This document shows positions 3,713 through 62,481 of a DNA stretch of 64,000 nt, piece after piece. The notes beneath the pieces were generated by a model. That model was not told the DNA's origin. It did no database searches and saw only the letters and a program-made list of their open reading frames with translations. Within the stretch, counting starts at the first letter, position 1; every line of letters begins with the position of its first letter. Position numbers and translations under genes: made by a program. The stretch spans positions 62,001 to 126,000 of the IMG/VR virus record IMGVR_UViG_3300020474_000001; one strand, written 5' to 3'.

Positions 3713-3881
3713 TAGATTGCTGTCGTTTTTGTTCTTCTTCTTCCAGATGTTGTTGCAATAACATCACATAAACGTCACGCTCCCATGGCATCATATTTTC
3801 AATTTCAGTCAATGAATATTTATGATACTGCATTAAAGAAAAATTAAGTTTAAAATAACTAATTAAATTCATGTGTACCAT
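3705..3881 (-). CDS. gp51: Baseplate hub assembly catalyst gp51 (58 aa)
   Basis: Hand-translated: MVHMNLISYFKLNFSLMQYHKYSLTEIENMMPWERDVYVMLLQQHLEEEEQKRQQSNG; characteristic YSLTEIENMMPWER motif; follows gp26. Confidence 0.85.
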   Translation of the reverse strand: MVHMNLISYFKLNFSLMQYHKYSLTEIENMMPWERDVYVMLLQQHLEEEEQKRQQSNG

Positions 3882-3883
3882 TC

Positions 3884-4603
3884 CTAGGCGAAAAAAGATG
3901 CAAGTCCCTCCAATAAAACTTCACTCTCAACTTTTGTTTTTGGATTCCTAATTGTAATCGTATGAGATAATTTTGGCATCGTCTCAAAGAATTTCTCAAT
4001 AGATTTAAACTGAGATGAATTCATGGACTCAAGAAATTCAAGCATTTCTTTCTTAGTACAATCTGAAGTAGACCAAGCTTCCTCTTCTGTAAAGATAGTC
4101 CCTATACATGATGCAATCAATTCAAAAGACTTTTCCATAGTATTTTTCTTAGTAAAGTCAAAGTTATTTTTTACAAACTGATCTAGAGATGGATATTTCA
4201 TCTGCAGCATTATATTTTCATCGACTTTTATCTGATCGGTATGCTCATCATTTTTCTTAACCTTGATATCATCTAAGTTAAGTTTGACATTTACTTCAGT
4301 CTCCTCATCATCTGGACAAATCAGGTTGACTTCGATTTGTTCTCCCACAGATTTACCACGAATATTTAAAAACAAATATTCAATATCAAATGTCGGAAGG
4401 TCCTGAACCTTTATGCCTGATGTTAGAATACAATTCTTTATCACATTTTTAATACCGGTGGTAATCTGCTTCATATCCTCGCTCTCAAGAGCAATGATTA
4501 AAAGCTTTTCTTCCTTGACAAGGAAAGGTCTATATTCAATAGTTTCTCCAGTTGAAGGCAATTCAAGTTCATATGTCGGAGCAACAATTTTTGGTAATGG
4601 CAT
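3884..4603 (-). CDS. gp26: Baseplate hub subunit gp26
   Basis: MPLPKI..PTYELELPS..YRPFLVKEEK..FDIEYLFLNIRGKSVGE. Confidence 0.9.
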   Translation of the reverse strand: MPLPKIVAPTYELELPSTGETIEYRPFLVKEEKLLIIALESEDMKQITTGIKNVIKNCILTSGIKVQDLPTFDIEYLFLNIRGKSVGEQIEVNLICPDDEETEVNVKLNLDDIKVKKNDEHTDQIKVDENIMLQMKYPSLDQFVKNNFDFTKKNTMEKSFELIASCIGTIFTEEEAWSTSDCTKKEMLEFLESMNSSQFKSIEKFFETMPKLSHTITIRNPKTKVESEVLLEGLASFFA

Positions 4604-15004: not shown

Positions 15005-15041
15005 ATTATAGACAAAAAAAGAGGGTCTGTCAAGACCCTCT
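15005..15041 (-). terminator. Terminator fused with a sigma70 promoter
   Basis: AGAGGGTCT/AGACCCTCT hairpin plus U-tract; TTGACA (15033-15028)-17nt-TATAAT (15010-15005). Confidence 0.85.
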
Positions 15042-15049
15042 GTATGAAT

Positions 15050-15277
15050 TTACCAATCTAGGTGCCACATATCTTTCGGACTTTTGCCCGTAGCTTTTTG
15101 GTAGAACCATTCAAGCGAGTTAACCATTACCCATTTCTGGTAGTTAACTCCGCGATAACAAAGATTCGCGTAAACATATTCTGGTTCTATTGGTCTATTG
15201 ACTTTTGTTGTTGCAAAATCCTTTGGTAATTGGTAATACATTAAGTTAGCTTCTTTGGGTGCATATAGCGATGCCAT
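15050..15277 (-). CDS. Small protein with a DUF4278-like YRGV motif
   Basis: NLCYRGVNY; the start may be the internal Met at 15241. Confidence 0.55.
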   Translation of the reverse strand: MASLYAPKEANLMYYQLPKDFATTKVNRPIEPEYVYANLCYRGVNYQKWVMVNSLEWFYQKATGKSPKDMWHLDW

Positions 15278-15329
15278 AAAAAAGACTCATCACTACAACC
15301 ATTGCAAGACTAATTTCTAATACAAGCAT
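15246..15329 (-). CDS. 27-aa single-TM microprotein
   Basis: MLVLEISLAMVVVMSLFYGIAICTQRS, preceded by a GGAGGA Shine-Dalgarno. Confidence 0.5.
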   Translation of the reverse strand: MLVLEISLAMVVVMSLFYGIAICTQRS

Positions 15330-15441
15330 TACTTCCTCCCTGGCAGTGTCCTGCCATGCAGATTTGTGCTCTCAAAAGTTTTTCCTCTTTAATTTTTTTC
15401 TGCTTAATGATCTCTAAAATATTGATAGAGACTTTTTTCAT
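15310..15441 (-). CDS. 43-aa basic microprotein
   Basis: MKKVSINILEIIKQKKIKEEKLLRAQICMAGHCQGGSNACIRN; ATGA overlap with the upstream gene. Confidence 0.6.
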   Translation of the reverse strand: MKKVSINILEIIKQKKIKEEKLLRAQICMAGHCQGGSNACIRN

Positions 15442-15611
15442 TTTGCTACCTCCACACCACGATACTTAAGAATTCTCTTAGGTTGTGATGCCTCACCAAG
15501 TACTTTATTAGTGTACTCTGTGCTGTCATATCCTACACCACGATATGTGGTGCTGTAACCGGAATTGCGGTTCTGAACATGAACATTGATGAGTTCTTGT
15601 AGTGTATTCAT
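15438..15611 (-). CDS. DUF4278-like small protein (57 aa)
   Basis: MNTLQELINV...TTYRGVGYD...LKYRGVEVAK with two YRGV motifs; CAGGAG SD; directly downstream of the aptamers. Confidence 0.75.
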   Translation of the reverse strand: MNTLQELINVHVQNRNSGYSTTYRGVGYDSTEYTNKVLGEASQPKRILKYRGVEVAK

Positions 15612-15645
15612 TGGTTTACTCCTGAAGTAGTTGGATTTTTAGGTC

Positions 15646-15824
15646 CGTTCCTTCAGTCGTTTGCGTCCCATTTACACTCAGGTGTTGCTTCCTTTACAGT
15701 CTCAATCACCTCAGACTTAATAATTTTACTTACACTACTACTTGCTTCAATACGTTGGATCACATCCTCAGCATCGGTGCAATGTATAGCAGAGTAGAGA
15801 AAAAATTCAAACATGGGATGAACG
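15646..15824 (-). ncRNA. Glutamine riboswitch-like aptamer 2 (glnA/Downstream-peptide class) with an ORF-sized P2 loop
   Basis: 5' CGUUCAUCCCA ... UGGGACGCAAACGACUGAAGGAACG 3'; P1 CGUUC/GAACG, P2 UCCCAU/AUGGGA. Confidence 0.7.
15653..15814 (-). CDS. 53-aa microprotein nested in aptamer 2
   Basis: MFEFFLYSAIHCTDAEDVIQRIEASSSVSKIIKSEVIETVKEATPECKWDAND; intact 162-nt frame. Confidence 0.7.
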   Translation of the reverse strand: MFEFFLYSAIHCTDAEDVIQRIEASSSVSKIIKSEVIETVKEATPECKWDAND

Positions 15825-15827
15825 CCC

Positions 15828-16064
15828 CGTTCCGCGACTTACTTGCGTCTCAAAGCAAATTACACTCACCTTCGACTTTGCTTCTAAGATATCTAATTAG
15901 AAATCTTTTGGAGCCATAGTCCAAATTATCATCTTCGATAATCTCTGCTGCTCTTTCTTGCCACCTTTCACATGGCATATGCCAGTTATAAGGTTTAGTC
16001 AAATGATCAGCGTGAGAAGCGAAAATTGTTAATCCGAGTAAGATAGTTTGCATTGGGATGAACG
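15828..16064 (-). ncRNA. Glutamine riboswitch-like aptamer 1 with an ORF-sized P2 loop
   Basis: 5' CGUUCAUCCC ... GAGACGCAAGUAAGUCGCGGAACG 3'; P1 CGUUC/GAACG; extended P2 UCCCAAUGCAAA/UUUGCUUUGAGA. Confidence 0.65.
15850..16053 (-). CDS. 67-aa microprotein nested in aptamer 1
   Basis: MQTILLGLTIFASHADHLTKPYNWHMPCERW...VEGECNLL; the ORF-track start at 16107 lies upstream of the promoter. Confidence 0.7.
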   Translation of the reverse strand: MQTILLGLTIFASHADHLTKPYNWHMPCERWQERAAEIIEDDNLDYGSKRFLIRYLRSKVEGECNLL

Positions 16065-16071
16065 TATGGTT

Positions 16072-16100
16072 ATTATAACCGTTACTAACTATATAGTCAA
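16072..16100 (-). promoter_or_regulatory. Sigma70 promoter of the riboswitch transcript
   Basis: TTGACT-17nt-TATAAT; predicted start about 1-2 nt before aptamer 1. Confidence 0.8.
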
Positions 16101-22335: not shown

Positions 22336-22445
22336 TTGAAAAAGGGTAGGTAATAGTGCAGGGAACACTAATGGTGATATTTCCACGACACCCTCCATCG
22401 TGGATATTAGAGACGTGTTTATACACCCCATAGGTCTCGGTTGAT
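22336..22445 (-). ncRNA. PhotoRC-II-like structured psbA leader
   Basis: GAGAC...GTCTC stem and TCCACGAT/GTCGTGGA stem with a GAGGG loop, in the position of the cyanophage PhotoRC-II motif. Confidence 0.65.
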
Positions 22446-22497
22446 GGTGTATCATCGGATCAAGCAACTTCACATTTCTTAACCCGTTGATGTAACT

Positions 22498-38799: not shown

Positions 38800-38873
38800 T
38801 CGGGATGATAGGATTCGAACCTACGGCCACTCGCTCCCAAAGCGAGTGCTCTACCAAACTGAGCTACATCCCG
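38800..38873 (-). tRNA. tRNA-Pro(TGG)
   Basis: CGGGATG acceptor, TTTGGGA anticodon loop, GGTTCGAATCC. Confidence 0.93.
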
Positions 38874-38896
38874 ATAAAATGAGTATAAATCAAAAA

Positions 38897-39058
38897 TCAA
38901 GATTCGTCAAGACTATCATTCTCTTCTATTTCTTTTAGATCCTCTTCATTTAAAAGATCAATCCACTCCTCATCAGGAGTGAAGAGGATTGGACCCTCCT
39001 CAATCCTCTCCTGAAGTTCTTCTAATAAAGGATCTCTTTTTTCTTTATTGTTTTCCAT
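38897..39058 (-). CDS. 53-aa acidic hypothetical protein
   Basis: MENNKEKRDPLLEELQERIEEGP... Confidence 0.5.
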   Translation of the reverse strand: MENNKEKRDPLLEELQERIEEGPILFTPDEEWIDLLNEEDLKEIEENDSLDES

Positions 39059-39348
39059 CACAAATCAATATCCTTTTTTAATTGAGCAAAAGCATCTTGC
39101 CTACCTTTTATCATTCCCTCAATAAAACCTGCCCTTTTCTCCCAGGTATCTCCAGTATCTGATCCCCTCTTAGGATTAATACACCTATGATCACCCAACT
39201 TATTGCAAACTAATCCTGCAAGATCTTCTTCAGAATTTTCACTTGAAGCACCAGTTGCCCATACATGTTTTCCATTTAACCACACCGCTTCACACTTCTC
39301 ACATTGCTTTCTTTCCAATTTAAAATCAGAAAATTCTTTATCAGACAT
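39058..39348 (-). CDS. Conserved Cys-rich hypothetical protein
   Basis: CEKC..WLNG.H.W, DLAGLVCN..CINP. Confidence 0.7.
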   Translation of the reverse strand: MSDKEFSDFKLERKQCEKCEAVWLNGKHVWATGASSENSEEDLAGLVCNKLGDHRCINPKRGSDTGDTWEKRAGFIEGMIKGRQDAFAQLKKDIDL

Positions 39349-39553
39349 GATTTTTCTCCTGTTGAGATTTAAATTCCTTTCTATCCTTTTCCAGTTCCCT
39401 TTCAATCTTTTTCTTGAACATCCACAGTCTAAAGTTTAAAAAGGCATACCGAGTATTAAGGTCAATAAAAGCAATTAATCTCATAGTAGCATTATATCCT
39501 CCATCAAGCAATAATACAATAACGATTAAGACAAGCAGATAGAATAGTGTCAT
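39341..39553 (-). CDS. Small membrane protein
   Basis: N-terminal TM; CTAAATA late promoter upstream. Confidence 0.6.
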   Translation of the reverse strand: MTLFYLLVLIVIVLLLDGGYNATMRLIAFIDLNTRYAFLNFRLWMFKKKIERELEKDRKEFKSQQEKNHV

Positions 39554-39586
39554 ATAATTTAATTACTTGTAGATATTTAGTTGTAA

Positions 39587-39673
39587 CGGAAGAGAGAGGA
39601 TTCGAACCTCCGGAGGACTTGCACCCTCGCCAGTTTTCAAGACTGGAGCCATAAACCACTCGACCACTCTTCC
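39587..39673 (-). tRNA. tRNA-Ser(TGA)
   Basis: GGAAGAG acceptor, CTTGAAA loop, long variable arm. Confidence 0.93.
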
Positions 39674-39919
39674 TTATCGCTCTTCGAAATCAATACGACG
39701 AACTTTACGTTGTCGTCTTGCCTCCTGATAAGCAAGATCAGAAGCAGAAAGTTGATCACCAACCTTTTGCTTTGTATAGTTTAACATAACAACCTCATTT
39801 AAGTCAACTGCTGATACTTTATCTTCTTTGACTGTCATCATATTTTGACATCCACAAACCTGAGTTTTTGTATTACTTACTATTTCTGTATTACATACTT
39901 TGCATCTTACGATAATCAT
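39674..39919 (-). CDS. Conserved Zn-ribbon hypothetical protein
   Basis: CKVC...CGC, RKVRRIDFEER. Confidence 0.7.
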   Translation of the reverse strand: MIIVRCKVCNTEIVSNTKTQVCGCQNMMTVKEDKVSAVDLNEVVMLNYTKQKVGDQLSASDLAYQEARRQRKVRRIDFEER

Positions 39920-39943
39920 TTTTCATGGTCCTCCTATTAGGAA

Positions 39944-40015
39944 TGCAAGATGAGGGATTCGAACCCCCGACAACCTCGGTGTAAACGAGACACTCTACCA
40001 CTGAGTTAATCTTGC
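39944..40015 (-). tRNA. tRNA-Val(TAC)
   Basis: GCAAGAT acceptor, TTTACAC loop. Confidence 0.92.
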
Positions 40016-40018
40016 AAG

Positions 40019-40090
40019 CTGGCCCGGCTGGGATCGAACCAGCGACAACTTGATTAACAGTCAAGCGTTCTACCGCTGAACTACAGGCCA
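40019..40090 (-). tRNA. tRNA-Asn(GTT)
   Basis: TGGCCTG acceptor, CTGTTAA loop. Confidence 0.92.
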
Positions 40091-40109
40091 TTGTACTCCC
40101 CGAAGGGAA

Positions 40110-40181
40110 AGCGGAATACCGGATTCGAACCGGTGACGTTCAGCTTGGAAGGCTGACATTCTACCGCTGAATTAATTCCGC
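40110..40181 (-). tRNA. tRNA-Gly(TCC)
   Basis: GCGGAAT acceptor, CTTCCAA loop. Confidence 0.92.
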
Positions 40182-40222
40182 AGCGATATGGTAATTATAA
40201 AGTATTACCAAACCTTTGTCAA

Positions 40223-40693
40223 CTATTCAAAAATAAACTCTCTCCATTCTGATACTTTTGTTCTTTCCAATTCCAACATGACTTTGCTGAGTGGTGCTTT
40301 TGGTTTTGAGCGAAGTTTCATGTTTGTCTCGTGCAAATATTTATTACCCTTTGCAACATTACATTTATCACAACAGGCAACCAAATTATCCCAGGTGTCC
40401 CCACCACCTTTACTTCGTGGAATTACATGATCGATTGTTAAATTTCTTGTTGATCCACAATACTGACAAGAGTATCCATCTCTTTTATAAATCATATTCC
40501 TTGTCGGTGTAGTTTCAGAAAATCGTAAAAACGGTATTCTGACAAAATTGACAAGTCTAATCACCCTCTTCGATATGAGTTTTGCTTTTTCCTTAAACAA
40601 AAGAACTACAGCTCTTTTCCAATTTGTGAATTGAAGCGGTTCATAAGAACTATTCAGAACTAAAATCGTAGAGTGCGGTTCTACCATTTCCAT
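40223..40693 (-). CDS. HNH endonuclease (McrA/HNH_5-like)
   Basis: RDGYSCQYCG..LTIDHVIPRSKGG..WDNLVACCDKCNVAK. Confidence 0.92.
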   Translation of the reverse strand: MEMVEPHSTILVLNSSYEPLQFTNWKRAVVLLFKEKAKLISKRVIRLVNFVRIPFLRFSETTPTRNMIYKRDGYSCQYCGSTRNLTIDHVIPRSKGGGDTWDNLVACCDKCNVAKGNKYLHETNMKLRSKPKAPLSKVMLELERTKVSEWREFIFE

Positions 40694-40730
40694 AAGAATT
40701 CTTTCATCCTCAAATGTATTTATTGGGGAA

Positions 40731-40804
40731 CGACTCAGGTAGGATTCGAACCTACGACCGACTGCTTAGAAGGCAGTTGCTCTATCCAGCTGAGCTACTG
40801 AGTC
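40731..40804 (-). tRNA. tRNA-Arg(TCT)
   Basis: GACTCAG acceptor, CTTCTAA loop. Confidence 0.93.
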
Positions 40805-40812
40805 AAAAAAGG

Positions 40813-40886
40813 CGGGATAGATGGGGCTCGAACCCACGACCCCCAGCGTGACAGGCTGGTGCTCTAACCAACTGAGCTACTACCCC
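40813..40886 (-). tRNA. tRNA-Asp(GTC)
   Basis: GGGGTAG acceptor, CTGTCAC loop. Confidence 0.92.
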
Positions 40887-52072: not shown

Positions 52073-52145
52073 TGGAGAATAGGAGACTCGAACTCCTGAC
52101 AGCCTGCTTGCAAAGCAGGTGCTCTACCAACTGAGCTAATTCCCC
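52073..52145 (-). tRNA. tRNA-Ala(TGC)
   Basis: GGGGAAT acceptor with G3-U70, TTTGCAA loop; own promoter TTGACA-17-TATAAT at 52156-52184. Confidence 0.93.
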
Positions 52146-61644: not shown

Positions 61645-62481
61645 TTATATCCTGTTGAAGAATGCGTCTAGCGTTCCATCACCTTTATTATATTTCTTCT
61701 CAATCACCCGCGTTAATCCCAATCGTTGTGTTGCAAAATCAATGTAATCTTTATCTATATCATATCCAATATAATCCCACCCAATATTGACTGCTGCAAC
61801 AGCAGTAGATCCTGTTCCCATAAACGGATCAAGAACTATACCAGATTGTTTTCCAGTTAATTTCAAGCAATCTTCAACTAATTTGACGGGAAATACTGCT
61901 GGATGCTTTTTATCTTCTCTCTTCATCCAAAGAGTTTCATATGGAATAAACCAACAATTACCTTTATCCCTAAGATTTGGTTTTGTATCATTCAAAGACT
62001 TACTGTGTCTCAGGTTTTCCTTGTAGTATTCATAAGGGACACCCACAGATAGACGATCTACATCTATACTACCATCTTTAGTAAAGTGGAAAAGATGTTC
62101 CCATGTTGGAGATAAAAATCTTTTACTGTTAATTGGTTTTGCATGACCACTAGTCTTACCATTTACATGAATAGACTTGACCCAATTAATATGATTTTGC
62201 AATATCCAATCCTGCCTAAGAGCAAGACCCACTTCCATGCCAATCCATGGATCAACATTAGAGTATCCCATATTGACAAATAAATGCCCATCATCTTTAA
62301 GAACTCGTTTTCCTTCTCGGAAGATTTCTACCAACCAGTCAAGATACTCCTGACGTGGTTTATTGTCATCATACTTACCGTATTTAATTTTAAGATTATA
62401 CGGAGGAGACGTAACGATAGCATCAATACTACTATCCTCCAGTTTTTTCATACCCTCTAAACAATCAAGCAAATAAAGCAT
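61645..62481 (-). CDS. Beta-class amino-DNA methyltransferase (probably N4-C)
   Basis: VTSPPY motif IV precedes DPFMGTGST motif I; HPAVFP. Confidence 0.9.
   Translation of the reverse strand: MLYLLDCLEGMKKLEDSSIDAIVTSPPYNLKIKYGKYDDNKPRQEYLDWLVEIFREGKRVLKDDGHLFVNMGYSNVDPWIGMEVGLALRQDWILQNHINWVKSIHVNGKTSGHAKPINSKRFLSPTWEHLFHFTKDGSIDVDRLSVGVPYEYYKENLRHSKSLNDTKPNLRDKGNCWFIPYETLWMKREDKKHPAVFPVKLVEDCLKLTGKQSGIVLDPFMGTGSTAVAAVNIGWDYIGYDIDKDYIDFATQRLGLTRVIEKKYNKGDGTLDAFFNRI

Follow-up and report, generated by a model that had tools for sequence, protein, structure and literature searches.

Organization of the locus

The window analyzed in this work is the whole stretch of 64,000 nucleotides that spans positions 62,001 to 126,000 of the marine cyanophage record IMGVR_UViG_3300020474_000001. 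On its minus strand, region 16064-15645 contains every conserved nucleotide of the glutamine riboswitches, arranged as two halves in which the loops of the P2 hairpins are occupied by two small open reading frames, ORF1 and ORF2; a promoter lies immediately before the element and a DUF4278-like (IF17-like) gene follows it (Table 1). Related loci are designated by L and a number. The original prediction described two tandem aptamers resembling glutamine riboswitches, each with a gene inside its P2 loop, and as an observation it was confirmed, since all the coordinates and sequence strings it gave are correct. The string CGUUCAUCCC is found at 16064-16055 and again at 15824-15815, GAACG at 15832-15828 and 15650-15646, and ORF2 ends W-D-A-N-D-stop on UGGGACGCAAACGACUGA. 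The arrangement is far more than expected by chance, as within the 64-kb window CGTTCATC on this strand, GCAAGTAAG, and all but one GGAACGG occur only at this locus, and the same halves flank homologous ORFs, or short hairpins, in 151 distinct phage elements.

Table 1. Features of the element and of the downstream genes; positions are those of the window and all features are on the minus strand.
Position	Feature	Supporting observations
16072..16100	Sigma-70-type promoter, TTGACT-17 nt-TATAAT; predicted start 2-4 nt before the aptamer	11 of 12 consensus match; same promoter in the same place in L001 and L002; two metatranscriptome contigs end at 16068, with no coverage upstream
16060..16064	Outer P1, 5' strand (CGUUC); pairs with 15650-15646	Invariant; partner inferred by exclusion from the inner-hairpin covariation, from the Rfam RF01739 alignment of ORF-free relatives and from RNAalifold
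16047..16058	Outer P2, 5' strand (UCCCAAUGCAAA); contains the ORF1 AUG at 16053-16051	10 of 12 pairs with 15859-15848; positions 3-4 covary across 40 ORF1-bearing relatives
15850..16053	ORF1, 67 aa (phrog_6471), in the loop of outer P2; hydrophobic N-terminus, then a two-helix domain bounded by two invariant Cys	dN/dS 0.21; AlphaFold2 mean pLDDT 79; homologous to ORF2 (hhalign 93.8%, E=1.7e-7)
15848..15859	Outer P2, 3' strand (UUUGCUUUGAGA); contains the ORF1 stop UGA at 15852-15850	Stop-codon type covaries with the bases before the AUG: UAG with UCCUA, UGA with UCUCA, UAA with UCUUA
15840..15847	Outer junction CGCAAGUA; CGC holds the ligand-contacting G and the long-range-pair C, AGUA is the 5' half of the E-loop	Matches the RF01739 consensus CGGAAGUA; residue roles from PMC6698751
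15835..15839	Shared P3, 5' strand (AGUCG); pairs with 15659-15655	5 of 5 canonical pairs in 148 of 151 elements; double changes G-C to A-U at two positions; different P3 sequences that still pair in L188, L189, L176 and L182
15820..15832	Inner P1 hairpin GAACG-GGG-CGUUC	CAACG...CGUUG in 7 loci, none with a single change; AAACG...CGUUU in L189; present in the unconstrained MFE
15813..15818	Inner P2, 5' strand (UCCCAU); contains the ORF2 AUG at 15814-15812	6 pairs with 15671-15666; at position 4, C-G 84 times, U-A 21, U-G 4 and A-U 2, with 2 mismatches in 113
15653..15814	ORF2, 53 aa (phrog_504), in the loop of inner P2; last six codons including the stop are the aptamer core	dN/dS 0.43; nearly all of the 111 distinct ORF2 proteins end in DAND or a one-residue variant
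15660..15671	Inner P2, 3' strand (AUGGGA, 15671-15666) and inner junction CGCAAA (15665-15660)	As for the inner P2 5' strand
15655..15659	Shared P3, 3' strand (CGACU); overlaps the ORF2 codons for N and D and the first base of the stop codon	As for the P3 5' strand
15645..15654	E-loop 3' half GAA (15654-15652), G, outer P1 3' strand GAACG (15650-15646), and G15645, partner of the long-range pair	RF01739 consensus GAAGGAACG aligned this way in ORF-free relatives at 41.0 and 38.4 bits
15619..15656	Putative expression platform; CUGAAG (15656-15651, including the ORF2 stop UGA) can pair with CUUCAG (15627-15622), which overlaps the Shine-Dalgarno AGGAG (15623-15619)	Helix in the MFE; UAA with U 41, UAA with C 0, UGA with C 63, UGA with U 29
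15438..15611	DUF4278-like (IF17-like) gene, 57 aa; predicted regulated gene (phrog_5049)	Pfam PF14105 20.4 bits, E=6.8e-4, below the 25.3 cut-off; same gene follows the element in relatives
15020..15441	Rest of the probable operon: 43-aa ORF overlapping the DUF4278 stop (15441-15310), 75-aa ORF with one YRGVNY motif (15277-15050, phrog_6192), terminator-like hairpin (15041-15020)	Metatranscriptome contigs cover 15080-16068

Conservation and covariation of the RNA element

In the 151 distinct elements each P2 is either a 10-30 nt hairpin or holds a homologous ORF, whereas the flanks are identical in both forms. The outer P2 is compact in 108 elements and ORF-bearing in 43, and the inner P2 is ORF-bearing in 140 and compact in 11. 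The isolates Syn10, S-TIM54, and Sf-CH1b, for example, carry both ORFs, whereas S-CAM22 has a compact outer P2. Marine metatranscriptome contigs were found that skip 144-147 nt of ORF2, one of them with a UUCG loop in its place. RNAalifold on a MAFFT alignment of ORF1-bearing units recovered a CGUUC/GAACG P1 but not P2, because the gaps were out of register; P2 was then counted in register with a script, and covariation was observed both in the compact forms and across the ORFs, such that the stop codon matches the bases preceding the AUG. The ends of each ORF form a more stable duplex with each other than with swapped partners (-16.7 against -10.4 kcal/mol, and -12.9 against -9.9 kcal/mol), although the pairing constraint outside the five core pairs is weak. 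P3 covaries too, with compensatory AGUCA/UGACU and AAUCG/CGAUU variants, and the anti-Shine-Dalgarno helix covaries with the ORF2 stop codon; these covariation counts and the associated Fisher tests are not corrected for phylogeny.

A search of the window against Rfam gave no hit at the locus, either at the gathering threshold or at E<=10, as the original prediction had anticipated from the long inserts. We then examined natural relatives with short P2 hairpins, and these pass the threshold of the Glutamine family RF01739 (35 bits) with 41.0 bits (L126, ORF-free element at 3879-3963), 38.4 bits (L136), and 40.3 bits (the inner unit of L182), so that the failure of the window copy is caused by the inserts of 150-200 nt and not by the core. 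Compact single halves, however, score below threshold (18.7-20.1 bits). All the nucleotides described for glutamine-I and glutamine-II as contacting the ligand, forming the base triple, or making the long-range pair (C1, G2, G18, C19, C39, G40, and G41; PMC6698751) are present in both cores.

A nested arrangement of the two cores

The interpretation offered in the original prediction was partly supported, and its assignment of the element to glutamine-riboswitch aptamers upstream of a DUF4278-like gene was upheld. It proposed two independent aptamers lying side by side, with P1 helices 16064-16060/15832-15828 and 15824-15820/15650-15646, each with a gene in P2 and linked by a pseudoknot between AGUCG and CGACU. 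Indeed, each unit has its own CGUUC...GAACG pair, this fold is thermodynamically equivalent to the nested one before P3 is counted (-112.4 against -113.1 kcal/mol), published surveys describe tandem glutamine riboswitches as separate units (PMC9481103), and it could exist as an alternative conformer. However, in the 7 loci with G-C to C-G changes, and in L189 with A-U, the changes in the first GAACG and the second CGUUC would put C.C and G.G (or C.A) mismatches in both P1 helices, whereas they are exactly compensatory in a local hairpin. In addition, the AGUA and GAA halves of the E-loop lie on different units and make a canonical glutamine-I junction only in the nested fold. The Infernal alignment of the ORF-free relatives L126 and L136 runs from the first CGUUC to the second GAACG with a 39-41 nt insert in P3, and RNAalifold finds the same nested fold unaided. 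We therefore consider the side-by-side model unlikely.

In the nested fold, the outer aptamer has its P1 formed from the two ends of the element, and its P3 is capped by an inner, circularly permuted aptamer whose P1 is closed by a 3-4 nt loop. The pairing of AGUCG with CGACU is real, but it is the shared P3 helix, completed by an AGUA/GAA E-loop, and not a pseudoknot. The inner P1 is demonstrated by the G-C, C-G, and A-U covariation, whereas the outer P1 is invariant, and its pairing rests on exclusion and homology rather than on covariation. Another circularly permuted reading, in which each 3' half pairs with the next 5' half as a self-contained aptamer, was rejected because the outer P2 strands covary with each other and not with the inner ones.

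The nested ORFs

The original prediction was supported in that whole, conserved ORFs lie in the P2 loops, start and stop codons lie in aptamer helices, and the C-terminus of ORF2 is encoded by the aptamer core. It might be argued that the ORFs are not translated and that their apparent conservation reflects structural constraints on the RNA in long P2 extensions, as no Shine-Dalgarno sequence precedes either AUG, both AUGs are paired, the dN/dS of ORF2 is fairly high, and there is no proteomic evidence. We regard this as very unlikely, since reading frames are intact in about 150 divergent copies with indels in multiples of three, the two Cys are invariant and Trp and Tyr nearly so, the dN/dS of ORF1 is low, the helical domain is predicted with confidence, homologs occur as ordinary genes in other contexts, and the pairing constraint outside the core pairs is weak. 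The profile search, made without two rows derived from GenBank records, found 347 representative clusters, whereas a word-based protein search gave only close phage relatives. Searches of the ESM Atlas and of the PDB with Foldseek gave no credible functional lead for ORF1, the best PDB hit having E=3.3 and an "antiholin" Atlas hit scoring 0.58, which is at chance level. The hydrophobic N-terminus and the Cys pair suggest export of the ORF1 and ORF2 products.

A second alternative is that the copies bearing ORFs are dead riboswitches, in which gene insertions into the hairpin loops inactivated an ancestral sensor and the conserved halves survive as promoter-proximal, intergenic, or recombination cassettes, or as plain long-range pairings that limit ORF translation to nascent RNA, as in MS2. 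This view is in line with the absence of an Rfam hit for the window copy, with the formation of the P2 stems in silico without ligand, with the existence of the ORF family outside aptamers, and with the acceptance of foreign DNA by the loops of this RNA, since what look like remnants of a homing-endonuclease gene sit in the inner-hairpin loop of L148, L155, and L169. Nevertheless, 141 of 151 elements carry at least one ORF, yet all keep every ligand-contacting base, and covariation is maintained in P2, P3, inner P1, and the anti-Shine-Dalgarno helix, whereas dead elements should decay. Moreover, phage S-TIM54 loses the WDAND coding through a premature UAG but keeps the RNA sequence, so that the constraint there is on the RNA. 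We consider this alternative improbable.

Comparison with other structured RNAs

The element shares with the glutamine-I riboswitch (glnA RNA, RF01739) the CGUUC/GAACG P1, a P2 closed by UCC/GGA next to the conserved A, the sequences of the CGNAAGUA junction and of the AGUA/GAA E-loop beside P3, a downstream gene that matches DUF4278 below the Pfam cut-off, and a putative translational anti-Shine-Dalgarno platform. It differs in that the junction reads CGCAA, as in class II, the P2 loops are far outside the length range of the family and encode proteins, and P3 is not a 3-bp hairpin; CGCAAGUA and GAAG are present and P3 covaries, but its two strands are about 180 nt apart and it is capped by a second aptamer instead of a tetraloop. 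The inner core lacks an E-loop in marine phages, whereas L189 has two. With the glutamine-II riboswitch (Downstream-peptide motif, RF01704), which occurs in marine picocyanobacteria upstream of DUF4278 genes, it shares the CGUUCAUCC...GGACGCA core and the GGAACGG strand with its long-range C:G pair. However, it has no H-type pseudoknot and no class-II P2, as no covarying stem flanks GGAACGG and the flanking AGUCG pairs with the distant CGACU instead. Scores against RF01704 are 20-34 bits for a cut-off of 33, at or below the cut-off in most relatives, and the only hit that passes (L136, 34.0 bits) overlaps a stronger RF01739 hit.

As in the tandem glycine riboswitch, two homologous predicted ligand-binding domains are physically coupled and feed one expression platform, but the glycine aptamers lie side by side and touch through tertiary contacts, whereas here the second aptamer is nested inside the first and the two share a Watson-Crick helix. 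Published surveys list tandem glutamine riboswitches as independent, pseudo-cooperative units and dropped candidates with intervening ORFs (PMC9481103); in the element described here, the strands of the two units pair with each other in inner P1 and P3, and only one anti-Shine-Dalgarno platform exists. Group I and II introns carrying homing-endonuclease or maturase ORFs in peripheral loops also accommodate a whole protein gene in a hairpin loop of a structured RNA, where folding and translation of the passenger compete, but here the host RNA is a predicted metabolite sensor and not a ribozyme, the ORFs are not mobility genes, and their start, stop, and last codons are part of the conserved core itself. 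In RNA phages, long-distance pairings gate translation, as in the MS2 maturation gene, where a start codon is paired to a distant downstream segment such that initiation is possible mainly on nascent or unfolded RNA; in the element of this DNA phage mRNA the pairing is a riboswitch stem whose stability should depend on a ligand.

Proposed function of the element

We propose, with reasonable though not full confidence, that the leader of roughly 420 nt (16066-15645) is one RNA device consisting of two glutamine-riboswitch ligand-binding cores joined end to end through the shared P3 in a nested "dumbbell". The outer core would be a canonical glutamine-I three-way junction, and the 3' strand of P3, the E-loop, and outer P1 would compete with the anti-Shine-Dalgarno helix, such that glutamine-stabilized folding most likely frees the ribosome-binding site of the DUF4278-like gene. 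This would be a translational ON switch, as shown experimentally for cellular glutamine riboswitches, which switch on this class of gene in cyanobacteria (PMC6212724). The two P2 loops hold paralogous small-protein genes, so in this view a translating ribosome must unfold the sensor and a folded sensor hides both AUGs. Our analysis establishes the anatomy, the covariation of both P2 stems, P3, inner P1, and the anti-Shine-Dalgarno helix, the homology to RF01739, and the purifying selection on the ORFs; on the other hand, glutamine binding, regulation and its ON direction, translation of the ORFs mainly from nascent or unfolded RNA, and a transient opening of the DUF4278 start by ribosomes finishing ORF2 on the anti-Shine-Dalgarno strand are inferred, as neither binding nor reporter data exist for this variant.

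The original prediction also inferred a reciprocal logic in which glutamine would turn the nested genes off and the downstream gene on, and this is partly argued against by our data. In the nearest-neighbor model the full aptamer fold (-113.1 kcal/mol) lies about 10 kcal/mol above the MFE (-123.4 kcal/mol), and both P2 stems also form in the anti-Shine-Dalgarno state, so that masking of the AUGs may not depend on ligand. In other lineages, the same small-protein family sits just upstream of the riboswitch (L188) or overlaps the stop codon of a DUF4278-type gene (L190 and L191), translationally coupled in the same direction, which suggests co-expression with DUF4278 rather than opposite regulation. 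A further reading, which is only a tentative possibility, is that one transcript alternates between two mutually exclusive roles on the same nucleotides: unfolded, it would be an mRNA for two small Cys-bounded proteins, and folded as a double aptamer at high glutamine it would hide their start codons and switch on an IF17-like putative glutamine-synthetase inhibitor. Ribosomes and glutamine would then compete directly for the core that also encodes the ORF2 C-terminus, and the phage could read host nitrogen status and translation capacity with a single RNA.

We found no published description of this arrangement, in a literature search that leaves aside whether a nested tandem form is mentioned by Ames and Breaker (2011). 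Riboswitch aptamers are treated as compact non-coding modules, and searches for them and for tandem arrangements discard candidates interrupted by ORFs (PMC9481103). The element indicates that an RNA with predicted ligand-binding cores can hold complete, selected protein genes in its loops and even share core nucleotides with codons, and that two aptamers can be fused through a common helix, one nested inside the other. It offers a natural system for studying competition between ribosomes and ligand on one RNA, points to phage manipulation of host nitrogen assimilation through IF17-like proteins, and implies that annotation by covariance models systematically under-counts riboswitches with long loop inserts. 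A scan of genome contigs gave 10 real hits, all on phage-like contigs, and 4 chance hits, with no evidence of the element in a cyanobacterial chromosome. The ORF-bearing arrangement is the prevailing form in a very abundant group of marine viruses; 387 GenBank cyanophage records match the region.

Organization of the element in the window

The element lies on the minus strand and starts almost immediately after a consensus sigma-70 promoter; the order of its parts and of the neighboring features is shown in the table. Two sequence blocks of the same kind each precede a small ORF, ORF1 and ORF2, and the second ORF is followed by a Shine-Dalgarno (SD) sequence and a DUF4278-like gene. The last codons of ORF2 read W-D-A-N-D-stop on UGGGACGCAAACGACUGA. 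The original prediction, that two glutamine-riboswitch-like aptamers each carry a whole gene within the P2 loop, held as an observation, and every coordinate and sequence string it contained was correct. In contrast, a search of the region with Rfam found nothing, even at E<=10. The window belongs to an uncultured T4-like cyanomyophage, whose nearest GenBank relatives are only about 78% identical, and contains a PhotoRC-II RNA and eight tRNA genes, which are typical of T4-like cyanophages.

Features of the element and other features of the window, with positions in the window
Feature	Positions	Strand	Details
Sigma-70 promoter	16100-16072	minus	TTGACT-17-TATAAT
First 5' half	16064-16055	minus	CGUUCAUCCC
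Outer P1	16064-16060 with 15650-15646	minus	closes the outer aptamer
ORF1	16053-15850	minus	67 aa, in outer P2; phrog_6471
First 3' half		minus	GAGACGCAAGUAAGUCGCGGAACGG, followed by a three-base linker
P3	15839-15835 with 15659-15655	minus	AGUCG/CGACU
Inner P1 hairpin	15832-15820	minus	3' strand of the first unit with 5' strand of the second
Second 5' half	15824-15815	minus	CGUUCAUCCC
ORF2	15814-15653	minus	53 aa, in inner P2; phrog_504
Second 3' half		minus	AGGAACGG, followed by the SD sequence
Anti-SD strand	15656-15651	minus	CUGAAG
Platform partner	15627-15622	minus	CUUCAG, overlaps the SD sequence AGGAG
DUF4278-like gene	15611-15438	minus	57 aa
DUF4278 start and P1 5' strands compared with it	15606-15611 versus 16059-16064 and 15819-15824	minus	AUGAAC and GUUCAU
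Small ORF	15310-15441	minus	43 aa, overlaps the DUF4278 stop codon (ATGA)
Small ORF	15050-15277	minus	75 aa, phrog_6192, single YRGVNY motif
Terminator-like hairpin	15041-15020	minus	
Sigma-70 promoter	TTGACA at 15033, TATAAT ending at 15005	minus	12 of 12 match
PhotoRC-II RNA	22369-22462	minus	66.3 bits
tRNA genes	38800-40886 and 52073-52145	minus	seven in a cluster at 38.8-40.9 kb and one at 52.1 kb

The two small ORFs found after the DUF4278-like gene include the phrog_6192 protein, whose motif is reminiscent of DUF4278 and which has a counterpart with YRGIHY or YRGVHY in the related loci L001 and L003 (L numbers designate the related loci that we retrieved). The terminator-like hairpin overlaps the perfect downstream promoter within 15005-15041, such that one operon appears to end and the next to begin within 40 nt.

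Compact and ORF-bearing forms among related phages

We found homologues of the region in 387 GenBank cyanophage records. In S-CAM22, the first unit is a compact RNA of 53 nt (CGUUCAUCC, a 20-nt hairpin, then GGACGCAAGUAAGUCGCGGAACGG) that gave weak but specific hits to both glutamine riboswitch families, whereas in Sf-CH1b, Syn10, S-TIM54, and the window the same position holds an ORF1 homologue. Two scans of IMG/VR gave 151 distinct complete elements, which fall into four combinations of compact and ORF-bearing P2.

State of the two P2 stems in the 151 distinct complete elements
Outer P2	Inner P2	Elements
compact	ORF	98
ORF	ORF	42
compact	compact	10
ORF	compact	1

The lengths are bimodal, and the 5' and 3' halves are identical in the compact and ORF-bearing forms. 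In addition, marine metatranscriptome contigs aligned to the window include variants that skip 144-147 nt of ORF2, one of which has a UUCG loop in its place.

Pairing of the P2 stems across the genes

In the compact forms, P2 covaries freely, as UCCC/GGGA, UCAGAG/CUCUGA, ACCC/GGGU, GCCC/GGGC, and UUCGCUAU/AUAGCGAA all occur. In the ORF1-bearing forms, the bases before the AUG track the stop codon: UCCUAUG pairs with CAUAGGA, UCUCAUG with CAUGAGA, and UCUUAUG with CAUAAGA, and the AUG itself pairs with the CAU located just before the stop. Counted in register, position 3 of the ORF1-bearing stem is C-G in 22 cases and U-A in 17 with one mismatch, and position 4 of the ORF2-bearing stem is C-G in 84, U-A in 21, U-G in 4, and A-U in 2, with two mismatches in 113. 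Each ORF's own ends make a stronger duplex than ends swapped between loci, -16.7 against -10.4 kcal/mol for ORF1 and -12.9 against -9.9 kcal/mol for ORF2. In S-TIM54, the UGG of WDAND is turned into UAG but GGACGCAAACGACUGAAGGAACGG is kept unchanged; the constraint on those bases is therefore on the RNA. In four loci (L030, L059, L113, and L149), the A after CGUUC and the C of CGCAA change together to G and U (CGUUCG ... UGCAAGUA), which looks like an A.C to G.U isosteric switch that extends P2 by one pair.

Nested arrangement of the two aptamers

We then asked how the two units are arranged, since the original prediction placed them side by side, with AGUCG of the first and CGACU of the second possibly forming a pseudoknot between them. 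Three independent lines agree on a nested topology. First, the AGUCG/CGACU pairing is real: 148 of 151 elements have five canonical pairs, AGUCA always comes with UGACU and AAUCG with CGAUU, G.U intermediates exist, and other lineages use different sequences that still pair. AGUA precedes AGUCG and GAA follows CGACU, so together they rebuild the E-loop plus P3 of the glutamine-I consensus (AAGUA-[P3]-GAAGGAACG).

Second, seven loci have GCAACG...CGUUG at the junction between the units, while the outermost CGUUC and GGAACG are unchanged. No locus has only one of the two changes, and the seven differ in linker, P2 state, and ORF2 subfamily; in L189, a locus from another lineage, the sequence is AAACG...CGUUU. 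These changes are compensatory only if the 3' strand of the first unit pairs with the 5' strand of the second as a local hairpin, whereas in the side-by-side model they would break both P1 helices. In three loci (L148, L155, and L169), 60-100 nt or more are inserted in the loop of this hairpin, between GGAACGG and the second CGUUC. In L148, the sequence just upstream of the second CGUUC ends a coding frame whose C-terminus (...LPIRKLAEVYQTSHTSIRRWKNSL) looked to us, by eye only, like a DNA-binding tail, possibly of a homing endonuclease, and S-TIM54 has an annotated HNH endonuclease gene directly upstream of the element (L003:544-1038). A third loop of this RNA therefore also accepts inserts.

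Third, on natural ORF-free elements the Glutamine model of Rfam passes its threshold (41.0 and 38.4 bits, GA 35), in an alignment that runs from the first CGUUC to the last GAACG and places a 39-41 nt insert inside P3. RNAalifold predicts the same fold unaided on 12 such elements. The window element is therefore built as an outer glutamine-I aptamer, with ORF1 in its P2, whose P3 is capped by an inner, circularly permuted aptamer with ORF2 in its P2. Both cores keep all nucleotides that contact glutamine or form the base triple and the long-range pair in the solved structures (PMC6698751). In L189 (720-1010), the design is fully symmetric, with AGUA...GAA on both strands of P3, giving an E-loop at each end, and CGGAAGUA in the inner junction, which suggests that the marine form lost one E-loop from a symmetric ancestor.

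Predicted expression platform

The anti-SD strand contains the ORF2 stop codon, the E-loop GAA, and the first G before outer P1, and is complementary to the platform sequence that overlaps the SD. The combinations of the stop-codon base and its platform partner across loci are as follows.

ORF2 stop codon and platform base across loci
ORF2 stop	Platform base	Count
UAA	U	41
UAA	C	0
UGA	C	63
UGA	U	29

The unconstrained MFE of the leader (-123.4 kcal/mol) contains this helix, the inner hairpin, and both P2 stems, whereas forcing the full nested aptamer gives -113.1 kcal/mol. That is the usual picture of a switch whose ligand-bound state needs the ligand and tertiary contacts. Cellular glutamine-I and -II riboswitches turn on DUF4278/IF17 genes at the level of translation (PMC6212724), and the same direction is the most economical reading here.

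The P1 5' strand GUUCAU is also the exact complement of AUGAAC, the start of the DUF4278 gene. Among loci L005-L124, codon 2 is AAC in 73 relatives and AAU in 7, although AAC is only 27% of the Asn codons in the long ORFs of the window; the window itself has AAU, giving a G.U pair. The MFE pairs 5' GUUCAU with this start region, which may be a second OFF-state pairing or only a codon-2 preference. In many relatives, including distant lineages (L002:1645-1700, L188, and L189 among them), an optional conserved module, ACGGAUCC-[short GNRA/UUCG hairpin]-GAGAAGGUUAA, lies between the aptamer and the SD sequence; its hairpin stem varies between loci while staying complementary, and it is absent from the window.

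The nested genes

Neither ORF1 nor ORF2 has a Pfam match. However, several lines of evidence indicate that they are real genes: dN/dS is 0.21 for ORF1 and 0.43 for ORF2, two Cys residues are invariant, and the two families are homologous to each other (hhalign 93.8%, E=1.7e-7). AlphaFold2 predicts a hydrophobic N-terminal helix and a confident two-helix domain, with no PDB fold match. All copies in the first 124 loci and the window lie between aptamer halves; the few exceptions are cut by contig ends.

An exhaustive profile search found 347 representative clusters, and of the best 148, 64 end in the aptamer-encoded DAND. We inspected eight others: one is nested in a different frame, with a C-terminus PRRK-stop that is read from CGGAAGUAA (L189); one lies just upstream and reads into the outer P1 and P2 strands (L188); two overlap the stop codon of a gene with DUF4278-type YRG motifs (L190 and L191); and four stand alone elsewhere in phage DNA (L193-L196). 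The family is therefore older than the nesting and is repeatedly linked to DUF4278, nesting being one arrangement among several and the commonest in marine cyanomyophages.

Proposed mode of action

The anatomy and the evolutionary constraints described here are what the analysis shows, whereas glutamine binding, the regulatory logic, and the translation of the nested ORFs described next are inferred. In the most likely reading, glutamine binding to the two coupled cores would stabilize P3, the E-loop, and outer P1, which would remove the anti-SD strand and switch DUF4278 translation on. As the AUGs of ORF1 and ORF2 are paired and lack an SD sequence, these ORFs would be translated mainly before their P2 3' strands are transcribed, or when the element is unfolded. 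A ribosome finishing ORF2 would sit on P3, the E-loop, outer P1, and the anti-SD strand, preventing sensing at that moment and transiently exposing the DUF4278 start. On present evidence the net logic may be either reciprocal, as originally proposed, or co-directional, but P2 formation in both predicted states and the co-directional coupling seen in L190 and L191 argue against a simple reciprocal switch. The original interpretation is supported only in part.

Comparison with published riboswitches

Glutamine riboswitches in cyanophages and tandem glutamine riboswitches are both known (PMC2864571, PMC9964418, PMC9481103). The survey of tandem riboswitches treats glutamine doublets as independent units and explicitly dropped candidates with intervening ORFs or gaps over 300 nt (PMC9481103). 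Our full-text searches, which did not extend to Ames and Breaker 2011, found no description of genes inside an aptamer or of a nested, shared-P3 pair. The element is a real, widespread, and well-constrained form of the glutamine riboswitch, as judged from sequence, with two features that to our knowledge have not been described: nested dual aptamers sharing P3, and protein genes in the P2 loops that share nucleotides with the putative ligand-binding core.

Occurrence in phage DNA

The element appears to be phage-borne; a scan of 185,579 species genomes gave only phage-like contigs. Contigs filed under a Flavobacterium isolate, Synechococcus and Prochlorococcus MAGs/SAGs, and a Euryarchaeota MAG carry this cyanophage element (L183, which is Nonlabens xiamenensis NODE_6 of 188 kb, L177, L187, and L184/L186). 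At 188-194 kb, three of them are the size of a cyanomyophage genome, and they are probably phage DNA that was mis-binned or co-sequenced.
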